A stretch of 64,000 nucleotides of DNA, from assembly GCF_001194135.2 (NCBI RefSeq), contig NC_068992.1, forward strand, positions 63,711,456-63,775,455, written 5' to 3'. The notes under the pieces are model-generated. The model did no database searches. It was not told where the DNA came from and was given only the letters and a program-made list of their open reading frames with translations. This DNA comes from Octopus bimaculoides. Lineage: Eukaryota. Position 1 is the stretch's first letter, and each line of letters begins with the position of its first letter. The position numbers and the translations under genes are program-made. Positions 5,447 through 34,399 of the stretch are shown piece after piece.

Positions 5447-5740
5447 CTTGAAGGAGCCTTAGTTCTTCAGTTGACCGAAAATGCCGTCATAAGTTTCGAC
5501 GATTACATGGATCAAAAGAAACCGAATAAAAATAAAAGGAATCCGTGGTTCCAAAGGTTCTGGCAAGAGGTCTTTAAATGTAAGCTGCCATCAGAAAAAT
5601 ACAACAGATCTCACCACTATAACTTCGGGAAAGTACGACTTTGTACCGGCAAAGAAGACGTCGCTAAATATGTCAATTCAGTGAAAACAGACGCTGAACA
5701 TCTTAGCAACGCCATCATGGCTTTCGCACAGACATTACAT
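5447..5740 (+). CDS. Class C GPCR (mGluR-like) internal exon, Venus-flytrap domain
   Basis: Acceptor tttttcag|5447, donor 5740|gtaagt, phase 0-0. Translation LEGALVLQLTENAVISFDDYMDQKKPNKNKRNPWFQRFWQEVFKCKL...CTGKED...AIMAFAQTLH carries the mGluR/CaSR-family RNPWFxxFW..F.C motif. Confidence 0.92.
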
Positions 5741-6151
5741 GTAAGTAGTAACATGACTTTTCGCATTTTTTTAATCAAGTTTAGCGGAATCGTTGGAGCA
5801 TTGGGAAAAATGTCTTGCCGTATTTGTTCCGGCCCTTTTTATTCTGTGTCCAAATCCTACCGAAATCAACATTCCTTCTCATCCTTTTGGAATGGTACAA
5901 GTCTAAGTAGCAGAGGCGATAGTATCATTTAACCCTACGCCCCAGAAATTTCAGGCCTTGTGCCTTTATATGAAGGAATTATTTCAAATGCTGTCGAGGT
6001 CTACTTCACCTTCCATCTTTTCGGGGTCGAGAAAATAAGTTCCAGTTGATCACTAGGGTCGATGTCATCGACAAGTGCCCTGTCCCCAAATTTGCATGCC
6101 TTGTACCTATATTATTATCATTATTATTATCGTTATCATCATCATATTATT

Positions 6152-6243
<92 letters not shown>

Positions 6244-8109
6244 GGCAGCGATCTTGTAGAATTGTTAGAAGGTCGGAAAGAATACTATGCAGTATGATTT
6301 CTGATTTTACATTGTGTTTAAATTCCACTCGTCGAGACGTTCTCTTTACCTTTCATCTCCTCAGGATCGATAAGACAAGTACCAGTTGATTGCTGTGGTT
6401 GAAACAATCCACTCATCCCCGCCCCTCACCGTCAAAATTGCTGGCCTTGTGCCAAAATTTGACAGCACCATTATTAAGGCAGCGAACAATCAGAATCGTT
6501 AGCTTGCTGGACAAAATACTTAGCGGTATTTATGTACCGGTTAATGTAACCGACCAACTCCAACCTCCCAAAACTGTTATCGTTGCACCAAAATGTATAA
6601 CCATCATTGTTTGTTCCTTCTCGAGCCTGGTTCATAAGGGCCGGTTTCCCGGTTTCGTTGGCGCATAGGTTCCCCACCTGGACGGGACGCCGGTCCGTCC
6701 CAGGTGAGCTGCTAGATGCAAGTGGAAAGAGTGAGAGAAAGTTGTGGCAAAAGAGTCAGTAGAATTTCGCCATTATCTTCTGCCGGAGCCGCATTGAGAT
6801 TACGTGTTTCGCTCATAAACACACACATCTCCCTGTCTGAGATTCGAACCTGCGATCTTTCGACTGCGAGGCCGCTGCGTTAATCACCAGGCCATGTGCC
6901 TCCACGTAACCATCATTACTACTTATTTATTTTTATATCGACAGTTTTTCATTTTCGTATCCCTCGCAGCTTCGATTAGTTAAATTCTTTTGTCTTATTA
7001 CTTTTTAAATATTTTTCCTTTATTTTCTATTGTCAGATAATTCAATAATCCTTTAGAAATTTATCATATTTTTTAATACTATAGACAATTAAATACTCTC
7101 TCTTCTCCAACTCCTCTCATCTCTCCTTTTTTCCCCCTTTATCTTTCTCCTTCTTTTCTTTTCTTTTTCTATTCTTTTTCTCTCTATTCTATTTTGGAAA
7201 ACAAAAGACTTGTTTCACGTCCTCTCCATTGCCGATAACAAAAAACTTTCAAGCAATTTTCACTAGTTTATTAAACTTTATCTACTTTATCCGTTTCTTT
7301 TACGATATAAAGAATAGTTTTCTCAGTACTTTGTTGTTTTGTACAGCTGCTGGGAGGACTTTCTAATAAATACGAGAGATAGATATTTCTTTGTCCTACA
7401 TTTCCAAATTAATACAATCTTTTATTGAAGTTACAGGTTTTGTTTTAGGGAAAATTCTAGTTATATTGTTTGCAGCATTGTTTCTTTATATCTGAAATTT
7501 TTGGGTGGGAGGTGAAGATATGTTGTGAGTTTAGGCTGTAAAGCTGAACATTACAGTAGAGAAGCGTGTGTGTTAACGAGAGAACATTTCTAATCCAGTT
7601 GGTTGTCAACCAAGCTGTGCATAGCTCTTATTATAAGTGACAGGTGGAGCCTCTATATCCTCACTTGCCCTGCAAGAAAAAGCAGTTAAATCGCTTGAAA
7701 ATCATATCTTACTGTATTGAAAAAAGAGAGAAAAAAAGACATGTATATCCAAGCTTCATGGGTTTTTGTTCTTTTTTTTAACCCGTGAGTTCATTGAAGT
7801 TTCATAAACAGTATTACACACACACACACTCACACACAAACGCACACATATACACACAAATACACGCACACAAATATACATATTTAAGACAGGCTCTGCA
7901 AGATTCAGAGGTCTTTCCCGTGTAGATCAAGGTTACTGAATTCTTCAAATAACATGTCGAAGGGCTTTGCATAATCTATGAAATCTATGAAGAGTCATTT
8001 TGCATCTCGACCGCCCGTTCCGTTATCGTTCTCAATGCAAAAATAGTATTCCTAGTACCAGCACTCTTTACAAAGCCCAAGGAAGCCTCTGTGTCCAATT
8101 GTTGTTGTT

Positions 8110-8495
8110 GTTGTTGGCACTCCGTCGCTTACGACGTCGAGGGTTCCAGTTGATCCGATCAACGGAACAGCCTGCTCGTGAAATTAACGTGCAAGTGGCT
8201 GAGCACTCCACAGACACGTTTACCCTTAACGTAGTTCTCGGGGATATTCAGCGTGACACAGTGTGACAAGGCTGACCCTTTGAATTACAGGCACAACAGA
8301 AACAGGAAGAAAGAGTGAGAGAAAGTTGTGGTGAAAGAGTACAGCAGGGTTCGCCACCATCCCCTGCCGGGGCCTCGTGGAGCTTTTAGGTGTTTTCGCT
8401 CAATAGACACTCACAACGCCCAGTCTGAGAATCGAAACCGCGATCCTACGACCGCGAGTCCGCTACCCTAACCACTGGGCCATTGCGCCTCCTGT
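8110..8495 (-). mobile_element. tRNA-headed SINE, third family
   Basis: - strand head ggaggcgcaatggcccagtggttagggtagcggactcgcggtcgtaggatcgcggtttcgattctc. Related copies at 6630-6910 (-), 54115-54440 (+), 53790-53940 (-) and 51190-51350. Confidence 0.8.
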
Positions 8496-8618
8496 GTCCA
8501 ATTAAGAGGACAATAACTGTCATCAAATTTTATTTCAAATACTTTTTTAATGTTTGTGAACAATAAATTTTGCTTTGTTTTTTCATTCTTAAATCTTATT
8601 CTGTCCCCTTTGATGCAG

Positions 8619-8724
8619 AACATTCATTGGGACTATTGTAAAGGAGTTCCGGGAATATGTGATGCAATGAAACCATTATCTGGAGAAGTCTTGAGCAAAT
8701 ACCTGGAGAGTGTTCGGTTTAAAA
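8619..8724 (+). CDS. Class C GPCR (mGluR-like) internal exon, Venus-flytrap domain
   Basis: tgcag|8619, 8724|gtaagt, phase 0-1. NIHWDYCKGVPGICDAMKPLSGEVLSKYLESVRFK continues the previous exon as in mGluR ALHNMH..LC.G..GLCDAMKPIDG..LL.YL..V.F. Confidence 0.92.
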
Positions 8725-9295
8725 GTAAGTACGATCGTAATCGAAGTAGTAATACCATTAAGAGTTAAACTTTTGTGCTAAATTTTCCAGAGAAAATTCT
8801 TAGATTATGAAAGAATTTTAAGAGTATAATGATGATAGTCAGCTTTGATAAAATTAGCATTTATTAGTCTAAATGTAAGACTAGGTATCTCCATCTCTAG
8901 AGGATATGTCATAATCACCAAATGGCAATTAAGACCGGGTCCGTATGAGAAAGGAAGATACTATCAAGAATCAAGAATTCTCCAAAATTCACGTGTTTCT
9001 TCCTCAATAGACCTCATCAACACGGCAGTTATCCAACCTTATCTCCCGTAGTCAAAGGACTTATATATATACAAAAAGAGTAGAATATATTTATGGTCTA
9101 TATAATTTGCCTAATTTAAACAACTCCCGGAAACAACTCAGAGTGGTTGGTGCCATATATTTGAAGAACATAGATAAATACAGGTATACCAAATAGCATA
9201 CAACATAAATTCTTGATTTATTAAAATCATCACCACCCTTAGATGATGTGTCGTGTTAAAGAAAATACTTGTACTTTCTTATATTTTATTTTCAG

Positions 9296-9432
9296 GTATG
9301 AGCGGGCAAGTGTTTGAATTTCATGCTGAGAGGGAACCAAAAGCGGAATATCGTTTAATGAACTTCCAAAAAATATCGCAAGGACAATACAAATGGATCA
9401 ATCTGGGAAAATCAAGAACGAAATTTTCAAAT
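9296..9432 (+). CDS. Class C GPCR (mGluR-like) internal exon, end of Venus-flytrap domain
   Basis: ttttcag|9296, 9432|gtaagt, phase 1-0. SMSGQVFEFHAEREPKAEYRLMNFQKISQGQYKWINLGK matches mGluR G.SG..V.FD.NGD...RYDIMNFQ....Y....VG. Confidence 0.9.
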
Positions 9433-11708
9433 GTAAGTAGAGTATACTTTTTTTGCTTAAGTCTTATTTATCACAGATTTAGTTTTGAATTTATTCTCCC
9501 CTTATGATAAATTTAAAAGATAAAGACCCTTCCCGGGTCATATAGACCGATAAGTGCCGGTTTCCTGGTTTCTGAGCTGTATATATTACACACCTGGACG
9601 GGGCGCCAGTCCGTCGCAAGATTACTCATTTTCGCAACGTTTTGCTGAACAACACAACGCGTCACTCGGTCCACGTCACATCTTAGAGATTTTACAATGT
9701 AAACAGAGCATTGAGCAGTAGACGTGGTGTCTCATTTTGATACTTGGCGCGAATCATCATGATGCAGCTAACTATTTTCGAATATTCAGTTAGCTTCCAT
9801 CCTCCGTGTCAGTTATCTTTTTTGTTCAGCCACAACTTCAATCTTTATGCTCTCCAACGCTGTTGATTTGTTCACCAATACTTCAGCTGGTGCTGAAAAG
9901 GAAGAAGACAAGGAATTTGTCCACCTCTAACCCGAACACTCAGTACATATGTTATATAATTTGACATTCATATGTATTTATAATATATGTTTCTTCACAT
10001 GTGTGTATAGGAGCAGGTGTGGCTGTGGGGTAAGAAGTTTGCTTCCCAACCACACGGTTCCGGGTTCAGTCTGGCAACTTGAGCTAGTGTCTTCGGGGCC
10101 CGTCCAACGCCATGTGAGTGTATTTGGTAGACAGAAGCTGAAAGAAGCCCGCCGTATATGTGTGTGTGTGTGTGTGTGTGTCTTTGTGTGTCTCTTTGTG
10201 GATGTGTTTTTCCCCAGTATCGCTTGACAACCGGTGCTGGTGTGTTTACGTTCCTGTAAATTAGAGGTTCGCCAAAGACACCAATAGAACAAGTACCACG
10301 TTTAAAGAAATAAATAAGTACTGGCATCGATTTGGCCGATTTAAAATTCAAAGTGGTGCTCCAGCATGGCCGCAGTCTAACGAGTAAAAGACATAAANNN
10401 NNNNNNNNNNNNNNNNNNNNNNNNNNNNNNNNNNNNNNNNNNNNNNNNNNNNNNNNNNNNNNNNNNNNNNNNNNNNNNNNNNNNNNNNNNNNNNNNNNNN
10501 NNNNNNNNNNNNNNNNNNNNNNNNNNNNNNNNNNNNNNNNNNNNNNNNNNNNNNNNNNNNNNNNNNNNNNNNNNNNNNNNNNNNNNNNNNNNNNNNNNNN
10601 NNNNNNNNNNNNNNNNNNNNNNNNNNNNNNNNNNNNNNNNNNNNNNNNNNNNNNNNNNNNNNNNNNNNNNNNNNNNNNNNNNNNNNNNNNNNNNNNNNNN
10701 NNNNNNNNNNNNNNNNNNNNNNNNNNNNNNNNNNNNNNNNNNNNNNNNNNNNNNNNNNNNNNNNNNNNNNNNNNNNNNNNNNNNNNNNNNNNNNNNNNNN
10801 NNNNNNNNNNNNNNNNNNNNNNNNNNNNNNNNNNNNNNNNNNNNNNNNNNNNNTCTTTGGAAAGTCGAGCAGTGTTTTTAGTTGAAAAGCTGAGATTGAA
10901 ATTACTAAGAGACCTGTATATTCAATAACTAATGTATATATATATTCACTTTTACTGTCTGATTATTTCTATAGACACGTGTGTAAATATTCTGATATGT
11001 GTGGGGGGATGGGGTGTTTTCATATAGACAAACATAGGTATATATATTTTTATGCATATACATATACATATGTTTATATCGTTATACGTGTTTATACACA
11101 CACACACACATACATACATACATACATACATACATACATACATACATACATACATACAAACATACATACATACATACATACATACAAACATATAGACATC
11201 TAAGAAAAGTCACAAAAAATAGGCACTGATATATTTTCTAACTCGAGGGGGTAAATGAATAAAAGTAGACAGAATTATAGAACCATTGCAGCTGATCTTG
11301 CTAATTGGGCCTTAAATAATATTAGATGACAGCACGTTTAAGTAATACCACGTTCTCTTCAGGGATACCTGCCATCTCTCAAATGCTGCTATCTAATATC
11401 TGGCTACCAACAGCCAATGCAAAAGCTATTGTTAAGATCAGCAGAAAGGGATGGATCTATAATACTGTATACTTTAATGGTTTATATATGTATGTATATA
11501 TGGATGGATGGATGGATGTTTGTATGGATGGATGTATGTATGGCAGTCACCGTATTCCATTTCATATCGGCTACCTCTGATGAGTGTAAGGTTATATAAT
11601 CGGATTGTTACTTAACACCCTTTTGTACCCTTAGCGTGAAACCGATTGGTAAGATCGGTCGTGATGGATATATCATACTGTACCCTTCGGATAATATATA
11701 TAAATTAG

Positions 11709-11948
11709 TGTCAACGGTGGTTCCAGAAATTCCGAGTCGGAAACTACAGTCTAGAAGACAAGCTTCATTCTGGAGGATCTGTAGAGCTCGACGAGGATGT
11801 CCTGCGAACCCTGATGGAACAAAATCCCATTGTAACTGTTGAGAAACTAGCAGAGAAGCTTGGACTTGATATCTCAACCATTCATCAACACCTGCATGCT
11901 ATCGGAAAGGTCAACAAATTGTATCAATGGGTTCCTCACATACTTTCC
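11709..11948 (+). mobile_element. Mariner transposase fragment
   Basis: CQRWFQKFRVGNYSLEDKLHSGGSVELDEDVLRTLMEQNPIVTVEKLAEKLG...IHQHLHAIGKVNKLYQWVPHILS: RWF..F...D..RSG HTH region and WVPH(E/I)L motif; truncated by (ta)n. Confidence 0.9.
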
Positions 11949-13574
11949 ATATATATATATATATATATATACATATATATACACATGAAGAATAATAATA
12001 AATGGAGCAAAACGCATATAAACAATAAGTTCCTTTAATTCCTACATATGTTTCAAAATATATGTGCACTCTANNNNNNNNNNNNNNNNNNNNNNNNNNN
12101 NNNNNNNNNNNNNNNNNNNNNNNNNNNNNNNNNNNNNNNNNNNNNNNNNNNNNNNNNNNNNNNNNNNNNNNNNNNNNNNNNNNNNNNNNNNNNNNNNNNN
12201 NNNNNNNNNNNNNNNNNNNNNNNNNNNNNNNNNNNNNNNNNNNNNNNNNNNNNNNNNNNNNNNNNNNNNNNNNNNNNNNNNNNNNNNNNNNNNNNNNNNN
12301 NNNNNNNNNNNNNNNNNNNNNNNNNNNNNNNNNNNNNNNNNNNNNNNNNNNNNNNNNNNNNNNNNNNNNNNNNNNNNNNNNNNNNNNNNNNNNNNNNNNN
12401 NNNNNNNNNNNNNNNNNNNNNNNNNNNNNNNNNNNNNNNNNNNNNNNNNNNNNNNNNNNNNNNNNNNNNNNNNNNNNNNNNNNNNNNNNNNNNNNNNNNN
12501 NNNNNNNNNNNNNNNNNNNNNNNNNNNNNNNNNNNNNNNNNNNNNNNNNNNNNNNNNNNNNNNNNNNNNNNNNNNNNNNNNNNNNNNNNNNNNNNNNNNN
12601 NNNNNNNNNNNNNNNNNNNNNNNNNNNNNNNNNNNNNNNNNNNNNNNNNNATATATATATATATATATATATACATAATGTTAAATCTCTGAACGAGGTA
12701 TAAACATAACTGCACGACAACGTGAAGTATATTTGCCACTTAAATGCGGCTAACCCCTAAGGGTGAATGCTACTGTAGCTTTTAGCCCCAAGAGAACATC
12801 TCCTCCAGCTGCCTATTGACACACTTTCTGTGCCCTGTCGGTATTTGCAAAGGGAAGTCACCCTTCCCATCGTCGATCTGACGTGATACGCACGGACTCG
12901 AGTTTCTGGGTATTTACCCTTCATCAGCGTACGACAATCACCGATCTTCGATGCGAAGGGGTCCCAATGCAAATACATATATACTTTTGCCAGTGACGAA
13001 AGTTCTCTGATCTCGAAAAAGTGTAAACAATCAATGTTAAATCTCTGAAAGAGGTATAAACAGTAACTGCACGACAACGTGAAGTATATTTGCCACTTAA
13101 ATGCGGCTAAACCCTAAGGAACCTAGATAGATAGATAGGTATGTATGTATGTATGTATGTATGTATGTATGTATGTATGTATGGATGGATGGATGGGTGG
13201 ATGGATGGATGGATGGATGGATGGATGTACGTATGTATGTATATCCGATGGGCTTCCGCTCACTTTTCGTGTACCAAATTCACTTACAAGGCATTATTAG
13301 GTCCTCGTCTATAGTAGAAGACATTTTCCAAGGGATCGTCCAGCGGAGCTGCACCCAACATCATTCTTAACTTCAGCGTCATGCTTGCGCCTATTTGAAA
13401 TGAAACAAAAAAAAAAAAAAGTTTCAGTACGTGACAGTGAACATGATGGTCACGGTTGGAATATATTATTTGACGTAGGTCAGTTCGATCAGAGTTGACG
13501 TAAGGATAAACAGCAAAAATGACAATAACGAAATCAATAAATCTATAAAAAGAAACGAAACAACAATTTTAGCT

Positions 13575-13642
<68 letters not shown>

Positions 13643-14471
13643 AAGAAGAAGAAGAAGAAGAAGAAGAAGAAGAAGAAGAAGAAGAATGATGATGATGATG
13701 ATGATGATTATGGTCACAACAACAAGAACAATAATAATAACAATTATAAATACCATTATTTTTTTCTTCAAATTTCAAGATTTCAAATTAATGACTTCAT
13801 TTGGAAGATTTTATTATATTCACGTTATTTATGAAGTACATTCTTGTTTTACACATACAACACACCCATACAACCATATATGAATATGCCCACGTATGTG
13901 TATATATGTATATAAATATTTATATATTTGTATATCTATCTATATATATATATTGATCTATGTGTGTGTGTGTGTGTGCCTGTATATGTGTGTGTATGTA
14001 TATGTATGCATATATGTATGTATTCATCTAATGTTTATTTAGGCTATAAGTGTGTAGATGAATGTCTATATATGTGAATTTATGTATACGTAACTATATT
14101 TTGATAGATAGATAGATAGACAGATAGACAGACAGACAGACGGACGGACGGACGGACAGACGGACGGACGGACTGTCTGACAGGCAGGCAGGCATATAGA
14201 TAGATAGATAGATATGTAGACATATATACATTTATATATATATATATGGATGAATATATATATATATATATATGTACATATGCATAAATATATATACATA
14301 CATTTATATATGTATATATAAACATATATATATATATATATGTATGCATACATATGCATATATGTATAAATATACATATATGTACTCATATATATGTCCA
14401 TATAAATGCATAAGTATATATACACATATATATATATGTGTGTGTATACATATATGTACACATGTATATAG

Positions 14472-14530
<59 letters not shown>

Positions 14531-16344
14531 NNNNNNNNNNNNNNNNNNNNNNNNNNNNNNNNNNNNNNNNNNNNNNNNNNNNNNNNNNNNNNNNNNNNNN
14601 NNNNNNNNNNNNNNNNNNNNNNNNNNNNNNNNNNNNNNNNNNNNNNNNNNNNNNNNNNNNNNNNNNNNNNNNNNNNNNNNNNNNNNNNNNNNNNNNNNNN
14701 NNNNNNNNNNNNNNNNNNNNNNNNNNNNNNNNNNNNNNNNNNNNNNNNNNNNNNNNNNNNNNNNNNNNNNNNNNNNNNNNNNNNNNNNNNNNNNNNNNNN
14801 NNNNNNNNNNNNNNNNNNNNNNNNNNNNNNNNNNNNNNNNNNNNNNNNNNNNNNNNNNNNNNNNNNNNNNNNNNNNNNNNNNNNNNNNNNNNNNNNNNNN
14901 NNNNNNNNNNNNNNNNNNNNNNNNNNNNNNNNNNNNNNNNNNNNNNNNNNNNNNNNNNNNNNNNNNNNNNNNNNNNNNNNNNNNNNNNNNNNNNNNNNNN
15001 NNNNNNNNNNNNNNNNNNNNNNNNNNNNNNNNNNNNNNNNNNNNNNNNNNNNNNNNNNNNNNNNNNNNNNNNNNNNNNNNNNNNNNTATATATATGTATA
15101 TATATATATATATGCATATATATGTATATATATATGTGTATATATATATATATATATACACACATACATACATACACACATTATATATATATACACACAT
15201 TATATATATACATACACACACATACACACATTATACACACACACACACATACACACATTATACACACACACACACACACACACACATACAAACAGAAGAA
15301 AGTGACAACGTAAAGCGTAAAAATAAGAAGAAAAAAAATTCTTTTTCCTATCTGCCACTCTTAATATTACTAAGATCTGGTTTAATATTATATTTAATCT
15401 TTTGCAAGTTGACATTTTATTTTATCACTTAACTGAAGACATGAGATATCTAGAGTTATCTGATGGGAATTCAGCATAATCTAATTTATATATCATCTCA
15501 ATCACTCACAGCCTCTTGTCCATTTGCACAATATCACTCAGACACTAGAAGAGAACTGTTCAATATTCTAACTTGACTGTTGCAGTCGGACTTCGTTTTA
15601 CAGTCGGACGCAAAATTAAGCTGCGGTTAGTGGTAATAAATAAGTATATCATATTACAAGTAACTCTGTTGTTATAGCGTGTGTGTGTGTGTGTGTGTGT
15701 GTGNNNNNNNNNNNNNNNNNNNNNNNNNNNNNNNNNNNNNNNNNNNNNNNNNNNNNNNNNNNNNNNNNNNNNNNNNNNNNNNNNNNNNNNNNNNNNNNNN
15801 NNNNNNNNNNNNNNNNNNNNNNNNNNNNNNNNNNNNNNNNNNNNNNNNNNNNNNNNNNNNNNNNNNNNNNNNNNNNNNNNNNNNNNNNNNNNNNNNNNNN
15901 NNNNNNNNNNNNNNNNNNNNNNNNNNNNNNNNNNNNNNNNNNNNNNNNNNNNNNNNNNNNNNNNNNNNNNNNNNNNNNNNNNNNNNNNNNNNNNNNNNNN
16001 NNNNNNNNNNNNNNNNNNNNNNNNNNNNNNNNNNNNNNNNNNNNNNNNNNNNNNNNNNNNNNNNNNNNNNNNNNNNNNNNNNNNNNNNNNNNNNNNNNNN
16101 NNNNNNNNNNNNNNNNNNNNNNNNNNNNNNNNNNNNNNNNNNNNNNNNNNNNNNNNNNNNNNNNNNNNNNNNNNNNNNNNNNNNNNNNNNNNNNNNNNNN
16201 NNNNNNNNNNNNNNNNNNNNNNNNNNNNNNNNNNNNNNNNNNNNNNNNNNNNNNNNNNNNNNNNNNNNNNNNNNNNNNNNNNNNNNNNNNNNNNNNNNNN
16301 NNNNNNNNNNNNNNNNNNNNNNNNNNNNNNNNNNNNNNNNNNNN

Positions 16345-16375
<31 letters not shown>

Positions 16376-16765
16376 TTGCTATTATGCAAAATGTCGTAAG
16401 TCCAAAACGTTGCTTTTTCAGAAAACGAAAAAATAGTTTCCTCATTCCATAGCAATACCATTGTACTACAATTTGACAATTTTTTATATCCTGGCATCTA
16501 AAACAGTTGGAGATACGATTGTTCAGCCAAAAGAACCGGCTATTGCAAGCAAAAATAAATATTGGAAAAATCGCATTTGTCCAAATTTGGACATACGACA
16601 GTTTAACATAATAGCAACGATATATATATGGACTAAAACACGTCAAGGCGGTGCCCTAGCATGGCCACTCTTAAATGACTTAAACAAGTGAAAGATAAAA
16701 TATAAAAGGTGGAGCGGACAACAAACAAGGTGTATTAGTTTGACGCTCAAGAAAAATGGAAGAGT

Positions 16766-16801
16766 CTTTGATGTTTCGATCCTACGCCCGTCTACAGAAA
16801 G
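16766..16801 (-). ncRNA. Minimal hammerhead-like motif (U6 variant), degenerate third copy
   Basis: CUUU-CUGUAGA-C-GGGC(GUAG)GAUC-GAAA-CA-UC-AAAG, located downstream of the PLE GIY-YIG remnant. Confidence 0.5.
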
Positions 16802-17095
16802 GAATGAGGAGAGAAAACGAACGGAGAGAGAGGGAAAACGGAGAGAAAGAAAACGTGTATATTCTGTGTATGTATATGTATGTAAGTGCGCTATGTGTGT
16901 GAGGCTATCTGACATATGTGTATGTTGTGGGAGGATGTATGAGGGACGTGGAGTAGGGGTGAGCGAAGATAAGCGTTGGTAGATGTGGGTGCATGGCTAT
17001 ACACATGCGGCTATATGTGAGGGAAAAGGATTGAGGGTTTGGGTGCTGGTGTATGTGAAGTGGCTAAGATATGTGTGTGCAAGTGCGTCTTTGTA

Positions 17096-17136
<41 letters not shown>

Positions 17137-17477
17137 CGTGGGGGAATAATCGTGTGTGTGTGTGGTGTAGCTGCTGAGCATAACGCAGTAGAGGTGTATG
17201 GGGTAGAGGAGGAGAGTCATTGGAAGGTGGGAGATGTGTGGTGTATGTCATTGGAAGGTAGGAGAAATGGGTTTAGATGAAAAGAGGTGATGAATTGAAA
17301 CCAGAAGGTACTAAGAAATGAAGAGAGAAAATAAATTTCTGCTCTCGTCGGAGGCAGGAGTCTGGGTGGCTTCTGTGCAAGGACAGTCCGAACACAGGCA
17401 GATGTTGTAGTGAATGACCGGTCGAGCGAAAGAGGCGTGAGACCACAGTGCCATTGTTGAGTCTGATGTCCTGGAGA

Positions 17478-18038
17478 TGTTCAGTTGAATGCCAGCCAGT
17501 TTGACCAATGTACAGAGAACGGCAGAGAGAGAAGAGGATGCAGTAGATTACATTGCTGGAGATGCAAGTGAATGAATCTGTGATGTGGTAGAAGCAGTGA
17601 TGGGTGCTAGTGAGGATAGTAGTGTTCGAGTGGTAAGGAGAGGTGCAGCGGTGTGGGTGAGAGCAATGGAAGGAATCAGGTCGAGTGCCAGGAATGGAGA
17701 AGAAGCTATGGACCAGAATGTCAAGTAGGTTATGGACACGTTTGAAGGGTGGGAGGTGTTCAGTTGAATGCCAGCCAGTTTGACCAATGTACAGAGAACG
17801 GCAGAGAGAGAAGAGGATGCAGTAGATTACATTGCTGGAGATGCAAGTGAATGAATCTGTGATGTGGTAGAAGCAGTGATGGGTGCTAGTGAGGATAGTA
17901 GTGTTCGAGTGGTAAGGAGAGGTGCAGCGGTGTGGGTGAGAGCAATGGAAGGAATCAGGTCGAGTGCCAGGAATGGAGAAGAAGCTATGGACCAGAATGT
18001 CAAGTAGGTTATGGACACGTTTGAAGGGTGGGAGGTGT
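17478..18038. repeat. Perfect 279-bp tandem duplication
   Basis: 17478-17756 is identical to 17757-18035; tgt microhomology at the junction. Confidence 0.95.
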
Positions 18039-19190
18039 GGGTCGATGAAGATGTGGAAGGTGGAGGGCTCAGATTACAATCGGCGAAAAAACCTGAAGAA
18101 TGGTGCGTTGGAGGGGAAAGAGAGGCAGGTAAGGGTGGGGTAGATGCGGGCATATATATATATATATCGTATGCTCGATGGGGATTGACACGGTACTTAG
18201 CCCTAATCATAACATATTCTTTCTACGATAGATACAAGGCTTGAAATTTGGGTAAGTAATAGAAGATTAGTCGATTATATCGATCTTAGTACTTGGTTGT
18301 TTCTTACTGTGTCTACTCTCGAAAGGATGAAAAGCAAACTCGACCTCGACAAATTTCAAGTCGGAACATAAAGTAAGAAGAAATTTTATCCAGCGTGCTG
18401 ACGATCCTGCTAGTTCGCCCCCTCCGTTTATCATAATATTTTGGTCTCTAATGTTAACACAAGGCCAGAATTTTCAGGTGAGTGGGTTAGTCGATAATAT
18501 CGATCCCAGCGCCCAACTGGTACTTATTTTGTCGATCTCAAAAGGATGAAATGAAAAGTTGACCTCAGTAGAATTTGAACTCAGAACGAATGAAATGTCA
18601 AGAATTTTGCCCGGCGTGCTAAGCCAGCTCACCGCCTTCCTAGTAAACATAACATATTGAATGACATGCACGCAAAATGTCTTTGACATTCTTTGTGTTC
18701 TACGAGAACTGATGTCGCTATATACTCATTTAGCTTTTACAAACGAACTTCATATTCTGTCTGCGATATTTTGTGAAAAGTGTTATAACCAGAAAATTCT
18801 TATATTTCTCATATGATATTTCAGTTTTCTATTTGAAGCTTTGGAACTATGTATATAGACTGTTATCGTGCCATACCAAATTTCTGTTGGAGTTATACGA
18901 TATAGCAAGTGCTTGCATTTGCATCCTTGAAAAAGATTAGTGTTTAAAAGAATGGGAGAATGATATCTAGTTTTTGAAACATATCTTTTTATAATATATC
19001 GTTTAAAAGAAAGGCAATCTGTACATCTTTCTTAAAGTGGATATACTGTGCAAAGCCACAAAACTGAGGTATTTGTGTCGGGAAAGCATCTGTTATAGAT
19101 GTATAGATCTAATAAGTACAGAAAGATATCAGTAGCAGATGCAAAATGCTGGACACTTTGTCTACTACGCATATAGATATATACAAGAAT

Positions 19191-19273
<83 letters not shown>

Positions 19274-19852
19274 CAAAAGCTAAATATATTCAGCGTCTCA
19301 TTTGAGCAATAAGATCATTTGTCTTCTGTAGTAACAGCCCTATGTAGAGATCGCTGGGTGGAATTGTATGTATGTATGTATGTATTTGCGCAAATTTGTA
19401 TGTTTTCTATTATGTATGTCTTTTCATGTATATAGCTGATGTCTAGACGTGTTCATATAATCCTTTCTACTATAGCTATAAGGCCTGAAATTTGGGGGAG
19501 GGGAATAGTCGATTACATCAACCCCAGTGTTCAACTGGTACTTAATTTATCGACCCCGAATGGATGAAAAGCAAAGTCGACCTCAGCGGAATTTGAACTC
19601 AGAACGTAGCGGCTGACGAAATACCGCTTAGCATTTTACCCGACGTGCACCCTATTCTGTATTATATTCTGGGTACGTGTAATGTCCTTATGTCTGTGTG
19701 TTGAGGGAGTTCATCAAGGGACCATGAATCTTCTATGTGTGGAATTTGTGTTTTATATATTCAATGTTCACCTTCAGGGAAAAAAATTACCCTGGTGGGA
19801 TCGGCGGAGTGGATGCTGGTTCCTCTTTGAAATATTGGGGTGTAACATATTG

Positions 19853-20080
19853 CTTGTGCATGCAGGGAGAGAAGGTTTTATCCCTAATGTTTAAGATGTT
19901 ATCTTTTGACCGAATGATGTTTAGCTTCTCAGTAATACAAAGCTCACATTTGGTACCCCGTCACCTGTATTTTCTGCTTTTAGCAATAATGCTCCATGTT
20001 ATTTGTGGGTCTCTTCTTTCAATGTCCATATCATATTGGATAAGGACGTCGCATGCCTTTTATTTTTGTCTCTGAATGAC
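19853..20080 (-). mobile_element. Penelope-like GIY-YIG C-terminal remnant (second lineage)
   Basis: SFRDKNKRHATSLSNMIWTLKE / PQITWSIIAKSRKY*RGTKCELCITEKLNII....ILNIRDKTFSPCMHK, with stop and frameshift. Matches the PLE T.LS.YIW.LK...I.WSI...C.LC..EK...LN.R.E..S.C.H.K pattern. Confidence 0.7.
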
Positions 20081-20329
20081 ACCAGATGCTGAGTGTATCT
20101 TTCTTAGAACGGGTTGCTCGTTGTTCCGATGTATGTCATACAGTTGCATGACATTTGCCCAACGTACTAGTGAGATTGAACCTGAAACTATGTGGTAAAA
20201 AAGAAAACGAACTTCTTAACCACGCAGCCATATATTTTCATTCTCCATTTCTTTTTCGGTTTTTTTTTTCTTCTTTTTTTACTTTTTTCTGTTTTTGAAT
20301 AATTGTTTTATTTTTTGTATTTTTTGCAG

Positions 20330-21586
20330 GAAACACTCAGAGGAATAAAATTTCGTAATATCGAACCTGTTTTTCCAGCTTCGTTTTGTAGTTTACCTTG
20401 CGAACCTGGTCACATACAGATCTCACACAGTGAAGAAGACTGTTGTTTTGTTTGCGTGCCCTGTCCTCCAGATCATTACATGCCCAGTGAAAGAGAGTGC
20501 ATACCTTGTCGCAATGGAACTACACCAACTCTGGACCACCGAGGTTGTGTACCAAGTCTCTCTGGGAACAGAAAGTCAACTTCTGCCGCCGAACGACGCG
20601 AACCAACCAATTCTACGGCAGAAAAAGTAAAGCAAACGACAAGGAGGAAGAAAATACCATCAGTGACGAAAAAAGCCGAAAGTGAACGAGGGCGAAACGA
20701 GTCCGCAACAAATAAGCTGCAATATGTGTCGAACGAAACGCACTTAAACTATACCTTGACGAATTCTTCAGCAGAAAACATTGAAACGAAGAATCAAACA
20801 TTAGATTTAGAGATGGATGAACTAGCAGGGGTAAATGAAACGAAAGAAGAGACAGAATCTTTCCCGGGGAAGAAACAGAATGAAGTCAGAAATAAAACAA
20901 AAATATTGAAACCGAATAAAAATGTGAAGCAAAAGGAGGGGAAGAATATTACGATGGTTTCGAATTCCACGTCGCAAAACTTGACTGAAGAAACAAAGAG
21001 CTTACCAGATGAAAACCTTCAAAACAATGGTACAAAGGCAAGAAAGAATCAGAACAGATCCATCGATGATATTAATAAGAACGCTTCTAAAAGTGCTGAG
21101 AATAGCGAGAAGAGTGAGGTGCTCCAGACTGTGGTAACAACTACCGTGTTCTTGGATGTTTCTAGCAAGAAGAAAAGCACCAGAAATAGCACCGAGACAA
21201 TTACCAAAAGTAATTCCTCCAATACTACTGGTAATGCTACCACTATTGACACGACTAGAAACAAAACTGCTACTGCAACTAATACTACTATTACTACTAC
21301 TGCCAATACTACAAGCTCAACAACAACAACAACAACAACAACAACTGCTAGCGCTGCATCAACTACGGCTACTGCAGCCAAAACCATTCTTGCTGATACC
21401 GGTGATACTAACAGTACTGTAACAACTACAGCGTCTGATATTGTGAGTACAAATACAGCAAGTCCAACTACAACCACGACAACGACTGCCACCGACGCTG
21501 CTTCTGCTACCACTACCCCTCCCACGACTAGTAACAGTACGAAAAATTCTAAAGACTTACAGTTATCATTTGAGAAAGTTTTTTGA
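20330..21586 (+). CDS. Class C GPCR-like terminal exon: nine-cysteine domain (NCD3G) followed by Asn/Thr/Ser/Lys-rich mucin-like tail, no 7TM
   Basis: tttttgcag|20330, phase 0 matching the 9432 donor. FCSLPC...DCCFVCVPC...ECIPC...RGC has all nine cysteines. The frame stays open to TGA at 21584-21586 and no hydrophobic helix follows. Confidence 0.85.
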   Translation, partial: ETLRGIKFRNIEPVFPASFCSLPCEPGHIQISHSEEDCCFVCVPCPPDHYMPSERECIPCRNGTTPTLDHRGCVPSLSGNRKSTSAAERREPTNSTAEKVKQTTRRKKIPSVTKKAESERGRNESATNKLQYVSNETHLNYTLTNSSAENIETKNQTLDLEMDELAGVNETKEETESFPGKKQNEVRNKTKILKPNKNVKQKEGKNITMVSNSTSQNLTEETKSLPDENLQNNGTKARKNQNRSIDDINKNASKSAENSEKSEVLQTVVTTTVFLDVSSKKKSTRNSTETITKSNSSNTTGNATTIDTTRNKTATATNTTITTTANTTSSTTTTTTTTTASAASTTATAAKTILADTGDTNSTVTTTASDIVSTNTASPTTTTTTTATDAASATTTPPTTSNSTKNSKDLQLSFEKVF

Positions 21587-22698: not shown

Positions 22699-24893
22699 NN
22701 NNNNNNNNNNNNNNNNNNNNNNNNNNNNNNNNNNNNNNNNNNNNNNNNNNNNNNNNNNNNNNNNNNNNNNNNNNNNNNNNNNNNNNNNNNNNNNNNNNNN
22801 NNNNNNNNNNNNNNNNNNNNNNNNNNNNNNNNNNNNNNNNNNNNNNNNNNNNNNNNNNNNNNNNNNNNNNNNNNNNNNNNNNNNNNNNNNNNNNNNNNNN
22901 NNNNNNNNNNNNNNNNNNNNNNNNNNNNNNNNNNNNNNNNNNNNNNNNNNNNNNNNNNNNNNNNNNNNNNNNNNNNNNNNNNNNNNNNNNNNNNNNNNNN
23001 NNNNNNNNNNNNNNNNNNNNNNNNNNNNNNNNNNNNNNNNNNNNNNNNNNNNNNNNNNNNNNNNNNNNNNNNNNNNNNNNNNNNNNNNNNNNNNNNNNNN
23101 NNNNNNNNNNNNNNNNNNNNNNNNNNNNNNNNNNNNNNNNNNNNNNNNNNNNNNNNNNNNNNNNNNNNNNNNNNNNNNNNNNNNNNNNNNNNNNNNNNNN
23201 NNNNNNNNNNNNNNNNNNNNNNNNNNNNNNNNNNNNNNNNNNNNNNNNNNNNNNNNNNNNNNNNNNNNNNNNNNNNNNNNNNNNNNNNNNNNNNNNNNNN
23301 NNNNNNNNNNNNNNNNNNNNNGTGTGTGTGTGTTTGTGTCCATACATATACACACGCGTGCGCGTGCGCTGTGTATGTTTATATATATTTACATATAACG
23401 ATTATTTCCCAAATAAACTCCCATCGTAATTTTTGCAAAACCAGCTAAGCTGCATTATAAATGGTAAGCAAAGTAGCTTCAACACTGGTTTGTCTCCCTG
23501 ATTATTTAGGAGAAAATCGTGCGTTGATAAAAAACAGAAATAAAGACGGTCTACCGACCATCTAGTGTTATTTTTAAAAGCATTTTGCCATGCACTATAT
23601 GTATGTATATATATATGAATATATGTATGTTTGTATATATATATAGATATATAAACATGGTTTCCTTCAACGGAATGACTTTCTCACCTGACGATCGCAA
23701 CGGCGTGAAATTCAGTTTTAGTAAATCATATGAACTATACTGTATATTAAGTTCTCTTTCCCCCATTTATATATACGTAGGAGTGCTGACATGTACCTGG
23801 CCTGAGGTAAAAGAAAATACAGGAGGATCAGTTAATTATGATTTTGTCCAACATATTCCCCTCTCAGATTCACACACTTATTGCAGCAGTACTTCAGTTT
23901 CTAAGCCCTGTAAAAGAACTTGGATGGTTAAGTCTCCATCCAGGCCTTTTCCGACACCCTTAAAGCCAGGAACTTTCTAGCNNNNNNNNNNNNNNNNNNN
24001 NNNNNNNNNNNNNNNNNNNNNNNNNNNNNNNNNNNNNNNNNNNNNNNNNNNNNNNNNNNNNNNNNNNNNNNNNNNNNNNNNNNNNNNNNNNNNNNNNNNN
24101 NNNNNNNNNNNNNNNNNNNNNNNNNNNNNNNNNNNNNNNNNNNNNNNNNNNNNNNNNNNNNNNNNNNNNNNNNNNNNNNNNNNNNNNNNNNNNNNNNNNN
24201 NNNNNNNNNNNNNTATATATATAATTATATGTATTTCTTCTATCTTAATGAATAATAATTCTTCGGATAGAATAAATGGGTTAATAGAAACCAATGTAGC
24301 AAAGAACACAAAATAACTTTGGTGTTGTTCCTGTTTTTAAGGCAGGAACTCCTTGAAATTTTGGGTATTTGAGTATATTTAAAAATTTAAGGAATGGAGA
24401 AAACGCATGTTATAATTGCATACTTTATTCCTACATATGTTTCAAAGGATTACAACCTATGTGATCCATAGGGATCTGTGATATTAAAATTGTAACATAT
24501 ATAGGTGCTTCAGTACTCTCAGGCACGATTGGTGACGATAACATTTTTCCTCTGTGATATTATATTGCGCCAAGCTGTTTATATATGCATTAACATTTCG
24601 CTAAATCAACCATAAATTTTTATGGCAAAAATATATATACCGGCAGCCGGATTTAGCCAGACCGTCGAGCGTTTGAGTAGTCACTATTGACGAGCTTACG
24701 ACTGATAGGTGAAACAAGTCTAGTCCAGCGATCCTAGAAACGCTCATGGGGTGGTTATCTCCTCTGTCAGTGTATATATATATTGCACGTTCCTTGCAAC
24801 ATTAAGAGTTTTAACTCTTATTTCTTACAATATAGGTGTTTCGGTACCCTCAGTCACAGTTAGTGACGATAAAACTTTTCCTTTATAGGAAAA

Positions 24894-24952: not shown

Positions 24953-25899
24953 TGTATGTATACTTGCATGTATACATACATATATATNNNNNNNNNNNNN
25001 NNNNNNNNNNNNNNNNNNNNNNNNNNNNNNNNNNNNNNNNNNNNNNNNNNNNNNNNNNNNNNNNNNNNNNNNNNNNNNNNNNNNNNNNNNNNNNNNNNNN
25101 NNNNNNNNNNNNNNNNNNNNNNNNNNNNNNNNNNNNNNNNNNNNNNNNNNNNNNNNNNNNNNNNNNNNNNNNNNNNNNNNNNNNNNNNNNNNNNNNNNNN
25201 NNNNNNNNNNNNNNNNNNNNNNNNNNNNNNNNNNNNNNNNNNNNNNNNNNNNNNNNNNNNNNNNNNNNNNNNNNNNNNNNNNNNNNNNNNNNNNNNNNNN
25301 NNNNNNNNNNNNNNNNNNNNNNNNNNNNNNNNNNNNNNNNNNNNNNNNNNNNNNNNNNNNNNNNNNNNNNNNNNNNNNNNNNNNNNNNNNNNNNNNNNNN
25401 NNNNNNNNNNNNNNNNNNNNNNNNNNNNNNNNNNNNNNNNNNNNNNNNNNNNNNNNNNNNNNNNNNNNNNNNNNNNNNNNNNNNNNNNNNNNNNNNNNNN
25501 NNNNNNNNNNNNNNNNNNNNNNNNNNNNNNNNNNNNNNNNNNNNNNNNNNNNNNNNNNNNNNNNNNNNNNNNNNNNNNNNNNNNNNNNNNNNNNNNNNNN
25601 NNNNNNNNNNNNNNNNNNNNNNNNNNNNNNNNNNNNNNNNNNNNNNNNNNNNNNNNNNNNNNNNNNNNNNNNNNNNNNNNNNNNNNNNNNNNNNNNNNNN
25701 NNNNNNNNNNNNNNNNNNNNNNNNNNNNNNNNNNNNNNNNNNNNNNNNNNNNNNNNNNNNNNNNNNNNNNNNNNNNNNNNNNNNNNNNNNNNNNNNNNNN
25801 NNNNNNNNNNNNNNNNNNNNNNNNNNNNNNNNNNNNNNNNNNNNNNNNNNNNNNNNNNNNNNNNNNNNNNNNNNNNNNNNNNNNNNNNNNNNNNNNNNN

Positions 25900-28565: not shown

Positions 28566-30449
28566 GGACACAGAAAGAAACAAGGAGAGAAAATAAAGAA
28601 TGTGTAGTGGCTAGCGATCTATCCATGTGTGTGTGTACGTCTGTAGGTGCATGAGTATGTGTTTAAGTGCATACGTATAAAACAATGAAGGCAACACCAT
28701 CTACGTGAGTAATAAGTTGCCGCCCCTATCTGATCAGGGCACCCCACGATCCAGACCTTCCACATCCACGTACGACGTATGCAACTATTGAAAATGGTTG
28801 GTTTCGAAAGCTCCAATGAGCTAACCAACTGAAATGTCAAAGTAAGCAGGAAGAAGAGGTTCCTGTCTTGATACAGAATTTCACTACCATGTAAAGTGGT
28901 TTTTCACCAGCATTCTATATTTTGTAAAGTCCTCTATAATCAGGCCCCATCTCCTAGAAAATCTGAATTCGACATTTTCCCAGATCTTATTGAAGGTCAT
29001 TTTAATTGACCATCATTTAGTCATTTGCTATTTGGATCAATAGGAATTCAGGCATACCCAAGAAGAGATGAGCTTCACGCACATTTTATTGACCTTCCCT
29101 TCAGATATACTTTTCCATTTTCTTTTTGTTCCTTTCTCTGCCTTTGTCGCTCTGATACTCCTTAACTAATCCATTTCCTTCTCGTTGTCTCAAGACGATG
29201 AAGCTGTGATGTTTCCACTTTTTATGGTCAGAACAGGGGTTCCTAATCGTCTGAGGGCAAGGCAATCTCTTAGGCTGTTTCCGGAGCCCATTTCTATAGC
29301 CCGCTGTCATTGTTGTGGACTCTACTGCTTTGTTCTAAGTTCCTCCGAGCAAAACCTCTCTAACCTCACTGTGCCCGTCTGCGTAACAGATGCTTTCTAC
29401 TCCACATCAACAAATTCATTGCTTTTCTTTTTGCGCCCACGATGGGGCACAACTCCATGCAGATCCTCCCGACCATCTGTCGCACTAGTCAACTCGGTGC
29501 TCACTACTGCTCGTATTGTGCCACAAAGGTAACAACGAGCCAAAGTTCAGCATTTCACGATCTTCGGACTGATTCATCTCATATATTGCAGCATTAGCAC
29601 GACATATGATTTAACAGTGCGCACTACTTTTTCACCCACTATGCAATTCTGAAGTCCCGGCATTCTGTTCCCTGATTCTTACCCATGTCGACGGGGAGTT
29701 GTTGCTCCACACATCAGCCAAGATTACTTTTATTTGTTGCTTTGAGGATATAAGAGAAGCTCCTGTGCTTTCAGAAATGCAGGGATATATGAGACCTTCT
29801 GCCTTGCTCGCTCTTGGATAAAGACTTCGGGTAGGGAGTCATTTTGGTGGTGAACATGTCTTTTTTCTATTAGATCACACATTTCCAATTCTTCTCTTTG
29901 ACTAGCAACACTGACGAAAGAATTGATGAAGTACTGTATGTATTGCTCAAAACCACACATTCACTTTTCATTAAATGGGCTTGATTTCACCACTTGGCAA
30001 AATGCATTGTTTTTGATTTTTTTGTTGTTGTTAACAGTATCATTCAAATTGTTCCAAATATTGTATTTAAATGTTGATATATTAATTTTTCGTGTACAAA
30101 TCGTGGGTTTTATTGTGAAATTAAATTTGTTCTCAGTCATTTTTGTCTGTTTGTTTTGTAGTATTTTTTTTTTTGTAAGTATTCACGTTTACTTTTTTTT
30201 AACGGATGCGTTTCTGTACCAACAAATGATCTTGATATGTAAGTGGAAATTGAAAAATAGAATTATGTCCAGTAATAACAGATCTTATGTCTCCCCCGTG
30301 GCATGGGCTAGACATGCAACGCGTCCCAAGTGGTTTCCTGTCGAAAATTATACAAAGAGAACTATATTCTAACTTCACTTTCCGCATGATAAAAATCATA
30401 GATTCTTCACAGAGAGATAGCTACACGCACATCATTCAATAACAACAAC

Positions 30450-30721: not shown

Positions 30722-31335
30722 TACAAAAGGAGACACGACAATGTGGCCAAATATGTCCACTGACTGTTGTGCGGTAAAGCAAACCTCGAGAGAGTCGAAC
30801 AATGGTATGAACATAAGCCAGAGAGAATAATGGAAAACAAACATTACAAAATACTCTGGGAGTTTAACATACAATGCGACCAAGTCATAAAGGCGAGACG
30901 GCCAGATATCGTGATCGTCCATAAAGATGAAAAAGAAGCAAAGATAATAGATGTTGCAATACCAGGCGATTCGAGGGTGAAATGTAAGGAAACAGAAAAG
31001 AGTGAGAGATACTAGCCACTGCGGGATGAGATAGGAAAGTCATGGGGCATGAGGAAAGTTATGGGGCATGAGGAAAGTTATGGTGATACCAGTAGTAATT
31101 GGAGCATTAGGAGCAGTTTCCAAGAGGTTTGAAAAACATATTAAGAATATTGGAGCTGCTGTCAGGCTCAAGGTGATCCAGAAGACAGCATTGTTGGGTA
31201 TAGCTCGCTTTCTAAGGAGAGTACTGTCTCTTTGAGTCAGAGGAGAAGAAGGCACTACTTGAAACCTTTGGTGATTTGTTATTGTCTGCTTTCAAGTAAA
31301 GAATAACCGGTAATTAAGAACTATCCGAGAGTCTC
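30722..31335 (+). mobile_element. R4/Dong-type RLE LINE 3' end (fragment b)
   Basis: KRRHDNVAKYVH*LLC...WYEHKP...KILWEFNIQCD...RRPDIVIV...IIDVAIPGD...KE.EK..RY...VIPVVIGALGAVS...QKTALLG; RHD and PD..D..K RLE motifs; followed by (aat)n. Confidence 0.9.

Positions 31336-34340: not shown

Positions 34341-34399
<59 letters not shown>

Follow-up and report, generated by a model that had tools for sequence, protein, structure and literature searches.

A coleoid cephalopod gene for a class C GPCR ectodomain with a predicted disordered tail in place of the seven-transmembrane domain

The ectodomains of class C GPCRs (G-protein-coupled receptors) are usually investigated in the form of artificial soluble constructs or of rare by-products of splicing. 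Several vertebrate class C receptors have truncated or secreted splice isoforms, such as GRM3 delta-exon-4 and GABA-B1e/j, which comprise portions of the ectodomain without the seven-transmembrane (7TM) domain. These isoforms are minor splice products of genes that encode full receptors. In contrast, the gene described here, part of which lies in a stretch of 64,000 nucleotides from Octopus bimaculoides (“the window”; NC_068992.1, positions 63,711,456 to 63,775,455 of the forward strand), is without 7TM-coding sequence. A Venus flytrap (VFT) domain, a nine-cysteine, cysteine-rich domain (CRD) and a long tail are its sole architecture in the species examined. We read its product, with a probability of roughly 0.6, as a coleoid-wide, secreted and probably disulfide-dimeric extracellular binding, scaffolding or decoy protein with a remodelled pocket, in which the 7TM domain was replaced in place.

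Like the metabotropic glutamate receptors (mGluRs), the cephalopod protein has a full VFT, a nine-cysteine domain, the cysteine that links protomers and the cysteine that ties the VFT to the CRD. Unlike them, it lacks the 7tm_3 domain, several of its pocket residues are replaced, and a basic tail of 240-390 residues, predicted to be disordered, follows the CRD. The closest solved structures listed are the ectodomains of mGlu3, mGlu4, mGlu7 and mGlu5. The most similar proteins outside the family are the protostome mangetout/DmXR (mGluR-B) receptors, at 32-33% versus 25-27% for other groups; profile scores, too, are highest for them. The cephalopod gene shares its intron positions with a receptor gene of this type, LOTGIDRAFT_133010 of Lottia, to which the comparison was limited, and in both genes the start of the terminal exon lies shortly ahead of the CRD. 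Receptors of the DmXR type have retained the 7TM domain and the residues for the amino-acid moiety, including Thr176 (PMC2695807), whereas the cephalopod protein has Arg at this place and no 7TM domain.

Molluscs already provide one soluble homologue of a receptor ligand-binding domain, the acetylcholine-binding protein (AChBP; PMC3674282, PMC3423370). The likeness is a functional analogy only: AChBP has an unrelated fold (a Cys-loop pentamer), retains the ligand-binding residues of its receptor and lacks a long disordered tail. Runs rich in Thr/Ser, as are typical of O-glycosylated mucin domains, occur in the octopod tail, but the VWD, C8, TIL and cystine-knot domains of gel-forming mucins of the MUC5AC type are absent, and Pfam gives ANF_receptor and NCD3G only. 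Full-text literature searches found no paper that describes the family. Its gene models already have database entries, with automatic names that mislead: “mucin-5AC” and “mGluR3” in O. bimaculoides, “mGluR6-like” and “mGluR3-like” in O. vulgaris and Argonauta. The NCBI name “mucin-5AC” is due to low-complexity similarity.

The gene and its terminal exon

The window comes from O. bimaculoides chromosome CM046612.1 (GCA_001194135.2), and a 1 kb assembly gap lies directly 5′ of it (L016 39716-40743). Within it, four exons on the plus strand with AG acceptors, GTAAGT donors and matching phases (0/0, 0/1, 1/0, 0) splice into a single open reading frame (ORF) of 597 codons that ends with TGA at 21584-21586. 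The features of the gene, in window coordinates, are as follows.

5447-5740, + strand: coding exon, VFT segment LEGALVLQL...AFAQTLH; phase 0/0, AG acceptor and GTAAGT donor; equivalent to exon 6 of 9 of the Argonauta gene
8619-8724, + strand: coding exon, VFT segment NIHWDYCKGVPGICDAMKPL...VRFK; ends in phase 1; intron position common to the Argonauta and Lottia genes; found by tblastn
9296-9432, + strand: coding exon, final VFT strands (S)MSGQVFEFH...KSRTKFSN; phase 1 to 0; the ANF_receptor match stops here
9433-20329, + strand: intron of 10.9 kb, holding repeats and four N gaps (10398-10853, 12074-12650, 14531-15086, 15704-16344)
20330-21586, + strand: terminal coding exon with linker, CRD, conserved motif, tail and TGA; the last Argonauta exon (42217-43626) is laid out alike
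20375-20548, + strand: nine-cysteine domain, NCD3G; Pfam 42.6-43.2 bits against a cut-off of 38.9; last Cys at 20546-20548
20567-20635, + strand: conserved post-CRD motif NRKSTSAAERREPTNSTAEKVKQ, at the site of the linker between the CRD and the first transmembrane (TM) helix; 17 residues invariant in octopods and cuttlefish
20636-21208, + strand: tail part 1, K/N/E/S-rich, predicted to be disordered, N-x-S/T sequons numerous; identity to O. vulgaris 82.7%
21209-21583, + strand: tail part 2, Thr-rich and mucin-like, with a (CAA)9 tract that encodes an in-frame Thr run; octopod-specific

The sequence-only reading of this DNA had proposed four exons that splice in phase at canonical sites, and the model above agrees with it. 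It had also proposed a continuous VFT and a complete nine-cysteine domain. The CRD part of this stands: all nine cysteines are present, invariant through the family and outgroups, and the ninth lies within RGCVPS at 20540-20557 (RGC at 20540-20548), where RGCVP had been placed at about 20554. The VFT part needs one correction: only the last ~180 residues of that domain are inside the window. On the spliced window product, Pfam matches the C-terminal end of ANF_receptor (79 positions at the end of the profile; 25.4 bits, a score equal to the cut-off). None of the short VFT exons, three in number, gives a match when scanned singly, and only the spliced product reaches the ANF_receptor cut-off. 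The exon at 5447-5740 has tblastn matches to the O. vulgaris, Argonauta and Sepia orthologues and to mGluR-type receptors of Lottia and insects.

Four upstream exons sit 13-31 kb before the window (CM046612.1 63680713-63698561). NCBI splits the gene into XP_014786696.1 (“mGluR3”, the N-terminal 319 residues) and XP_014786699.1 (“mucin-5AC”, the part in the window). The junction across the 10.9 kb intron, between ...KFSN and ETLR..., is unbroken at the protein level in O. vulgaris, Argonauta and Sepia and in the assembled transcripts of Sepia, and the equivalent 9.3 kb intron of the gap-free Argonauta locus (32887-42216) holds no further match to the protein. Therefore, no coding sequence crosses an N gap.

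Beyond the ninth cysteine, 343 codons follow without a stop, whereas 14 and 33 stops interrupt the two remaining frames; at the tail's own base composition the chance of such an open tail is ~5e-10. No 19-residue window of the tail exceeds a Kyte-Doolittle (KD) hydropathy of 0.62, and the tail therefore has neither a TM helix nor a C-terminus of the glycosylphosphatidylinositol (GPI) type. The hydrophilic tail without TM helix or GPI signal, ~343 codons long and ending in TGA at 21586, is thus as the sequence-only reading had described it. Across its entire length it carries 23 N-x-S/T sequons, and its C-terminus ...LQLSFEKVF is common to the window and the O. vulgaris protein CAI9731372.1 (931 residues).

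A hidden 7TM domain was searched for in several ways. With three full-length mGluR-type receptors as queries, tblastn found no 7TM similarity on either strand of the window at E<=10, and only the four exons matched. The Argonauta hians locus spans 53.6 kb without N and contains nine coding exons, the last of which encodes the CRD and the tail in one ORF; no 7TM similarity occurs anywhere in it. The convergent gene ODAD1, on the opposite strand, lies 1.8 kb downstream of the Argonauta stop codon and ~17 kb downstream in the window. Transcripts agree with this picture. In Sepia pharaonis, S. esculenta and a further decapodiform, contiguous RNA-seq assemblies free of introns run through signal peptide, VFT, CRD and tail, with in-frame stops upstream and a stop codon after the tail, followed by 213-370 nt of AT-rich 3′ untranslated region (3′UTR). 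A run of A at the end of the S. pharaonis contig was considered as a poly(A) tail and rejected, since the longer S. esculenta 3′UTR shows an internal A-rich stretch.

The 7TM-bearing gene LOTGIDRAFT_133010 of Lottia also has nine coding exons, and its last exon encodes residues 483-857, that is, the CRD, the 7TM domain and the C-terminus. All eight of its intron positions coincide with those of the Argonauta gene, within the accuracy of the edges of the alignment segments. Because the Lottia CRD and 7TM domain share one exon and the two genes agree in their intron positions, the ancestral 7TM domain lay in the CRD exon, and a 7TM exon of its own is not to be expected. In 7TM-bearing relatives, the homologue of the exon at 20330-21586 is the last exon, and there it codes for CRD and 7TM. 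As the tail lies inside the exon that codes for both in Lottia, the 7TM domain was therefore replaced in place, and not spliced away or lost in a gap.

The sequence-only reading, which had seen no 7TM-like exon, had pointed to a candidate donor near 20626 (aaa/gtaaag). This site corresponds to Val-Lys codons of the conserved motif, which other species write as GTG AAA, GTC GAG or GTT GAG. With a motif Val codon at the site and no 7TM similarity in gap-free Argonauta, no splice from it to a 7tm_3 exon hidden in a gap is indicated, and no member of the family is an orthologue with a normal 7TM domain and no tail. The absence of a 7TM-like exon is upheld by the window searches, the Argonauta locus and the Sepia transcript ends alike.

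One further coding segment downstream of the tail is possible:

30038-30102 (65 nt), + strand: possible alternative 3′ coding mini-exon ISFKLFQILYLNVDILIFRVQI; tblastn aligns residues 792-832 of orthologue P0002 to 29980-30102

The O. vulgaris model CAI9731371.1 joins an internal donor at 21209/21210 to this mini-exon, skipping the Thr-rich tail, and both the donor (A/GTAAT) and the mini-exon acceptor (AACAG/T) are present in the window. The resulting C-terminus of CAI9731371.1 is a moderately hydrophobic peptide of 25 residues, ISFKLFQILYLNVDILIFRVQISRE. In O. bimaculoides, the unspliced frame would continue into a very hydrophobic stretch (…LFSVIFVCLFCSIFFFVSIHVYFFL…). The mini-exon is not a 7TM exon: it has no Pfam match and a hydropathy maximum of 1.40. 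The surrounding hydrophobic ORF (29902-30369) was considered as a hidden TM exon and rejected, as it has no Pfam match, only 65 nt of it are used in O. vulgaris, and the sequence downstream differs between species.

Fold and ligand pocket

In the AlphaFold2 model of the Argonauta protein, residues ~55-599, which make up the VFT and CRD, have block-mean predicted local distance difference test (pLDDT) values mostly of 70-93, with a few loops lower. The tail, residues ~600-983, is almost all below 50 and has no secondary structure. Foldseek matches the model to the mGlu5, mGlu2 and mGlu3 ectodomains with E ~1e-42 and TM-scores up to 0.87. By sequence, the closest solved structure is mGluR3 (phmmer E = 2.7e-76, residues 45-591), and the alignment ends at the last CRD cysteine.

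The pocket residues were read from two alignments, that of HMMER to mGluR3 and one by MAFFT of 15 sequences, with 7TM-bearing relatives and five family members among them. The mGluR1 numbering and the roles of its pocket residues (S165, T188, D208, Y236, D318) are presumably those of Kunishima et al. 2000. In all cephalopod members the equivalents are:

S165 and Y236: S and Y, both kept
T188, D208 and D318: R, Y, and I/L or deleted
R78 and K409: E and D, with the charge reversed

At the pocket columns of the MAFFT alignment, S-T, D, Y-G and D are retained in the 7TM-bearing relatives. Three of the five residues of the alpha-amino-acid signature are thus replaced in the cephalopod proteins, together with both gamma-carboxylate contacts. 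According to PMC2695807, the pocket threonine is common to all mGluRs, mutating it strongly reduces the affinity for glutamate, and T176A abolishes activation of DmXR. Given this essential role, the replacement of T188, D208 and D318 makes canonical binding of alpha-amino acids or glutamate unlikely on sequence grounds. The amino-acid sensor or decoy that the sequence-only reading had suggested is therefore not supported by the comparison. The replaced residues are invariant from octopus to cuttlefish, which argues that the pocket has been re-specified or locked rather than being in decay.

Residues that would serve a dimer have been retained. A cysteine in the lobe-1 loop (...SYRC(R/P)(G/D)G...) aligns with the interprotomer cysteine of mGluR3 (...YMCPDG...) and is conserved in all sequences, and the cysteine that ties the VFT to the CRD is also kept in the family. 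The protein is thus probably a covalent, disulfide-linked dimer.

Family, origin and genomic neighbourhood

Orthologues are found in O. vulgaris (835 and 931 residues), Argonauta hians (990), S. pharaonis (864), S. esculenta (854) and further decapodiform clusters. By Pfam, all have ANF_receptor and NCD3G and are without 7tm_3. The architecture of VFT, CRD and tail is therefore present in at least three genera (Octopus, Argonauta and Sepia) and in both coleoid branches, so that the genomically encoded protein seen by the sequence-only reading is a conserved one. Clustered at 90% identity, the family comprises five clusters from profile and word-index searches and a sixth (P0128) from an exhaustive profile search of 1.84 billion representatives; none carries 7tm_3. 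In the exhaustive search the tail matched in three clusters only, all from the family. The next single-VFT matches outside the family score 385 bits versus 1541, and all six that were scanned carry 7tm_3. The same search also returned predicted proteins of 1,800-3,900 residues with 3-13 tandem VFT matches (P0033-P0039, P0049, P0050 and others), which may be genuine multi-VFT proteins or gene models in which clustered class C receptors are fused. In the full-length O. vulgaris orthologue, ANF_receptor is matched over positions 2-352/353 at 147.6 bits, compared with 229-277 bits in true mGluRs.

A signal peptide, called from the hydropathy of the N-terminus, is present in the orthologues: a short charged start leads into a hydrophobic h-region (KD 1.84-2.34), all other segments stay within 1.6, and the C-termini are hydrophilic. 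In O. bimaculoides the N-terminus is that of XP_014786696.1, upstream of the window. A polybasic run comes directly after the signal peptide at residues ~26-36, reading GRRRKNRNRKR (GRRRKNRNRKRS), or GRRKKSKNKRR in Sepia (P0002, P0003, P0005, P0022). The run resembles a heparin-binding cluster or a furin-type R-X-K/R-R site.

The tails of the family are 240-390 residues long, with a pI of 9.3-10.5, 10-15% Lys and, in the orthologues, 11-23 N-x-S/T sequons. The label “mucin-like” that the sequence-only reading gave to the tail fits the octopods, whose tails have 19-23% T, 11-13% S and Thr runs. It does not fit the cuttlefish, whose tails are K/S/E-rich with 6-8% T and have a conserved block of their own (...SVSERKKKSALEFHY...SPI(D/E)F...); the T-rich tail part 2 was not found in the Sepia tails. 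Common to both is the motif of ~30 residues after the CRD, with the pattern [NS]RK[SA][TA]SAAERR[EA]PTNSTAE.V.Q, in which the amino acids are kept while third codon positions vary.

Selection was assessed by the ratio of nonsynonymous to synonymous substitution rates (dN/dS). Between Octopus and Argonauta dS is saturated (1.5-2.4; undefined for the VFT), which makes the ratios unreliable, and two decapodiform pairs were therefore relied on:

S. pharaonis vs S. esculenta (dS 0.08-0.20): VFT 0.059, CRD 0, motif 0, rest of tail 0.54
S. pharaonis vs a less closely related decapodiform (dS 0.9-1.2): VFT 0.10, CRD 0.09, motif 0.09, rest of tail 0.37

The two Octopus species were compared by protein identity, which is 93% for the VFT part, 91% for the CRD, 100% for the motif (30/30) and 81-83% for the tail; indels are almost absent. 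Purifying selection on the VFT, CRD and motif is strong, and the tail is fast-evolving. The low ratios of VFT, CRD and motif and the amino acids kept there show that the gene is functional. Most constraint falls on the folded ectodomain and the short motif, while the tail is constrained mainly in its composition. The gene is also expressed: 92 blocks of RNA-seq run assemblies, 24 of them read, contained the S. esculenta protein, and two of the runs are documented as larvae of this species. The species of the runs was assigned through papers that cite three of them (PMC5541922, PMC10571815, PMC10442824). The sequence-only reading had raised the possibility of a pseudogene; ratios of 0-0.10 in VFT and CRD and the presence of transcripts speak otherwise.

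The origin of the gene can be narrowed only to a lead. Among the 120 best matches to the Lottia protein P0006 there are gastropods, bivalves, an annelid, a nemertean and many arthropods, and no cephalopod. Cephalopods may thus lack a canonical, 7TM-bearing mangetout/DmXR orthologue, and from the same absence the cephalopod gene might be a derived form of it. In a neighbour-joining tree the cephalopod clade forms a long branch, the placement of which has a bootstrap support of 31%. ODAD1 was not found within 10 kb of the mangetout-type gene in Lottia or Haliotis. An origin from a mangetout/DmXR-type receptor is therefore a lead only.

The remaining features of the window are the following.

17576-17725 and 17855-18004, + strand: open segments within the 10.9 kb intron, 279 bp apart, with identical 50-residue translations (ICDVVEAVMGASEDSSVRVV...); a tandem duplication or repeated element
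30.7-35.4 kb, + strand (e.g., 30764-31012, 33311-34030, 34399-35047): cluster of open segments that share recurring motifs (…ILWDF…QTD…RPDI…) and have poly-N-encoding repeats on their flanks
43539-43874 and 43152-43385, - strand: ODAD1 exons; ODAD1_CC at 92 bits (cut-off 27) and 26.1 bits (just below the cut-off)
38404-38727 and 48397-48630, - strand: probably further ODAD1 exons; no Pfam match
61725-61937, - strand: exon of another gene with a U-box domain (PF04564, 75.4 bits), of the E3/E4 ubiquitin ligase type

Pfam gave no match for the three open segments at 30.7-35.4 kb that were scanned. The segments of this cluster look like transposon remnants, which would account for an intergenic space larger than that in Argonauta.

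Proposed function, competing views and significance

The 7TM domain of an mGluR-type class C GPCR gene was replaced by a tail within the ancestral terminal exon. In the mechanism that we propose, the product would be secreted, because a signal peptide is present and TM and GPI signals are absent, and it would form a dimer linked through the lobe-1 cysteine, since both this residue and the VFT-CRD cysteine are kept. Such a protein would not itself signal through G proteins. Its pocket, remodelled yet highly conserved, with Arg at the key Thr and Glu/Asp for the Arg/Lys of mGluRs, would accept a protein partner or a ligand that is not an amino acid. The protein would probably be kept on anionic matrix, mucus or cell surfaces by its polybasic N-terminus (RRRKNRNRKR) and its basic tail, mucin-like in octopods, and heavy glycosylation is predicted. 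In function, it would serve an extracellular binding, scaffolding or decoy role as a class C counterpart of the molluscan AChBP. In a more detailed version, an mGluR-type receptor of the coleoid ancestor, possibly the mangetout/DmXR orthologue, became, by conversion in place, a dimeric binder that is secreted, disulfide-linked and tethered to matrix, has a pocket re-specified for a non-amino-acid ligand or a partner, and modulates extracellular signalling in cephalopod tissues. We put this version forward tentatively.

Several points count against a secreted binding protein of this kind. Secretion, dimerisation, glycosylation and matrix binding are all deduced from the amino-acid sequence, and the RNA-seq sources are whole-animal or larval. 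In O. bimaculoides itself, the exon for residues ~293-339 is absent from the readable sequence and the N-terminal exons are outside the window; the missing exon is probably in one of the five assembly gaps between the two gene parts. The annotated O. vulgaris isoform with a moderately hydrophobic end may allow membrane association of a minor isoform. The dN/dS of 0.37-0.54 in the tail is a weak constraint, and the tail may be little more than a spacer. Finally, the remodelled pocket could equally be that of an internally salt-bridged, ligand-free VFT.

This last point leads to the most serious of the competing views, in which a ligand-free VFT serves as a structural or adhesive glycoprotein of matrix or mucus, or as a dominant-negative partner that forms lobe-1 heterodimers with full-length class C receptors. 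Internal salt bridges, R/K with E/D, would then join the conserved residues of the pocket, which has indeed gained both acidic and basic residues. The retained interprotomer cysteine and the basic termini rich in glycosylation sequons fit such a role, as does the engagement of mGluR ectodomains by protein partners such as ELFN, as described in PMC13544217. The strong constraint over the whole VFT, however, fits ligand binding equally, and we consider the ligand-free view possible but rather doubtful. It is unlikely that the protein is a secreted sensor, buffer or decoy for glutamate or other L-amino acids, binding them as a soluble VFT dimer in the manner of mGluR, CaSR or T1R. Its VFT and CRD fold is intact and nearest to mGluR ectodomains, the equivalents of Ser165 and Tyr236 are kept, and the VFT is strongly constrained. 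Against this stand the substitutions at T188, D208, D318, R78 and K409 in all members, the effects of mutating the threonine in DmXR and mGluRs (PMC2695807) and the retention of S-T, D and Y-G in every 7TM-bearing relative aligned.

Two further explanations deny that there is a new protein to explain. A decaying receptor remnant, whether a unitary pseudogene or a non-functional truncated duplicate that has stayed open by chance, would be expected to have a low-complexity, fast-evolving tail, to have lost the canonical ligand residues and to match ANF_receptor less well than true mGluRs do, as is the case here. It is nevertheless very improbable, since VFT and CRD have a dN/dS of 0-0.10 in two species pairs, the ORF and architecture are maintained in octopods and cuttlefish, the 30-residue motif is kept despite synonymous codon turnover, transcripts recur in the 92 assembly blocks, and 343 open codons would hardly arise by chance. 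Even less credible is a normal class C GPCR disguised by the assembly or annotation, its 7TM exon lying in one of the N gaps (22699-23321, 24988-25899, 32358-33270) or reached through an internal donor. The window does have 15 gaps, in O. bimaculoides the gene is plainly divided between two NCBI models and lacks one exon because of a gap, and the donor at 21209/21210 is used in one O. vulgaris model. However, the gap-free Argonauta locus has no 7TM domain in the 1.8 kb between tail stop and ODAD1, the contiguous Sepia assemblies finish with a stop codon and 3′UTR, and the Lottia relative with the same intron positions has its 7TM domain in the CRD exon. Moreover, the alternative O. vulgaris exon is not 7TM-like, and the candidate donor at 20626 is a conserved Val codon.

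If the protein is indeed secreted as proposed, a class C GPCR ectodomain has become fixed as a stand-alone secreted protein. Octopods and cuttlefish diverged ~270 million years ago. Since before this split, a dedicated gene has retained only the VFT and CRD, which shows that the module can have a selected function without G-protein coupling. The current misnaming would mislead receptor counts in surveys of cephalopod genomes. The family would offer a natural soluble VFT-CRD dimer for structural work and an example of the conversion of a receptor into a secreted protein with a rebuilt ligand pocket, and its members are candidate extracellular modulators in cephalopod tissues.

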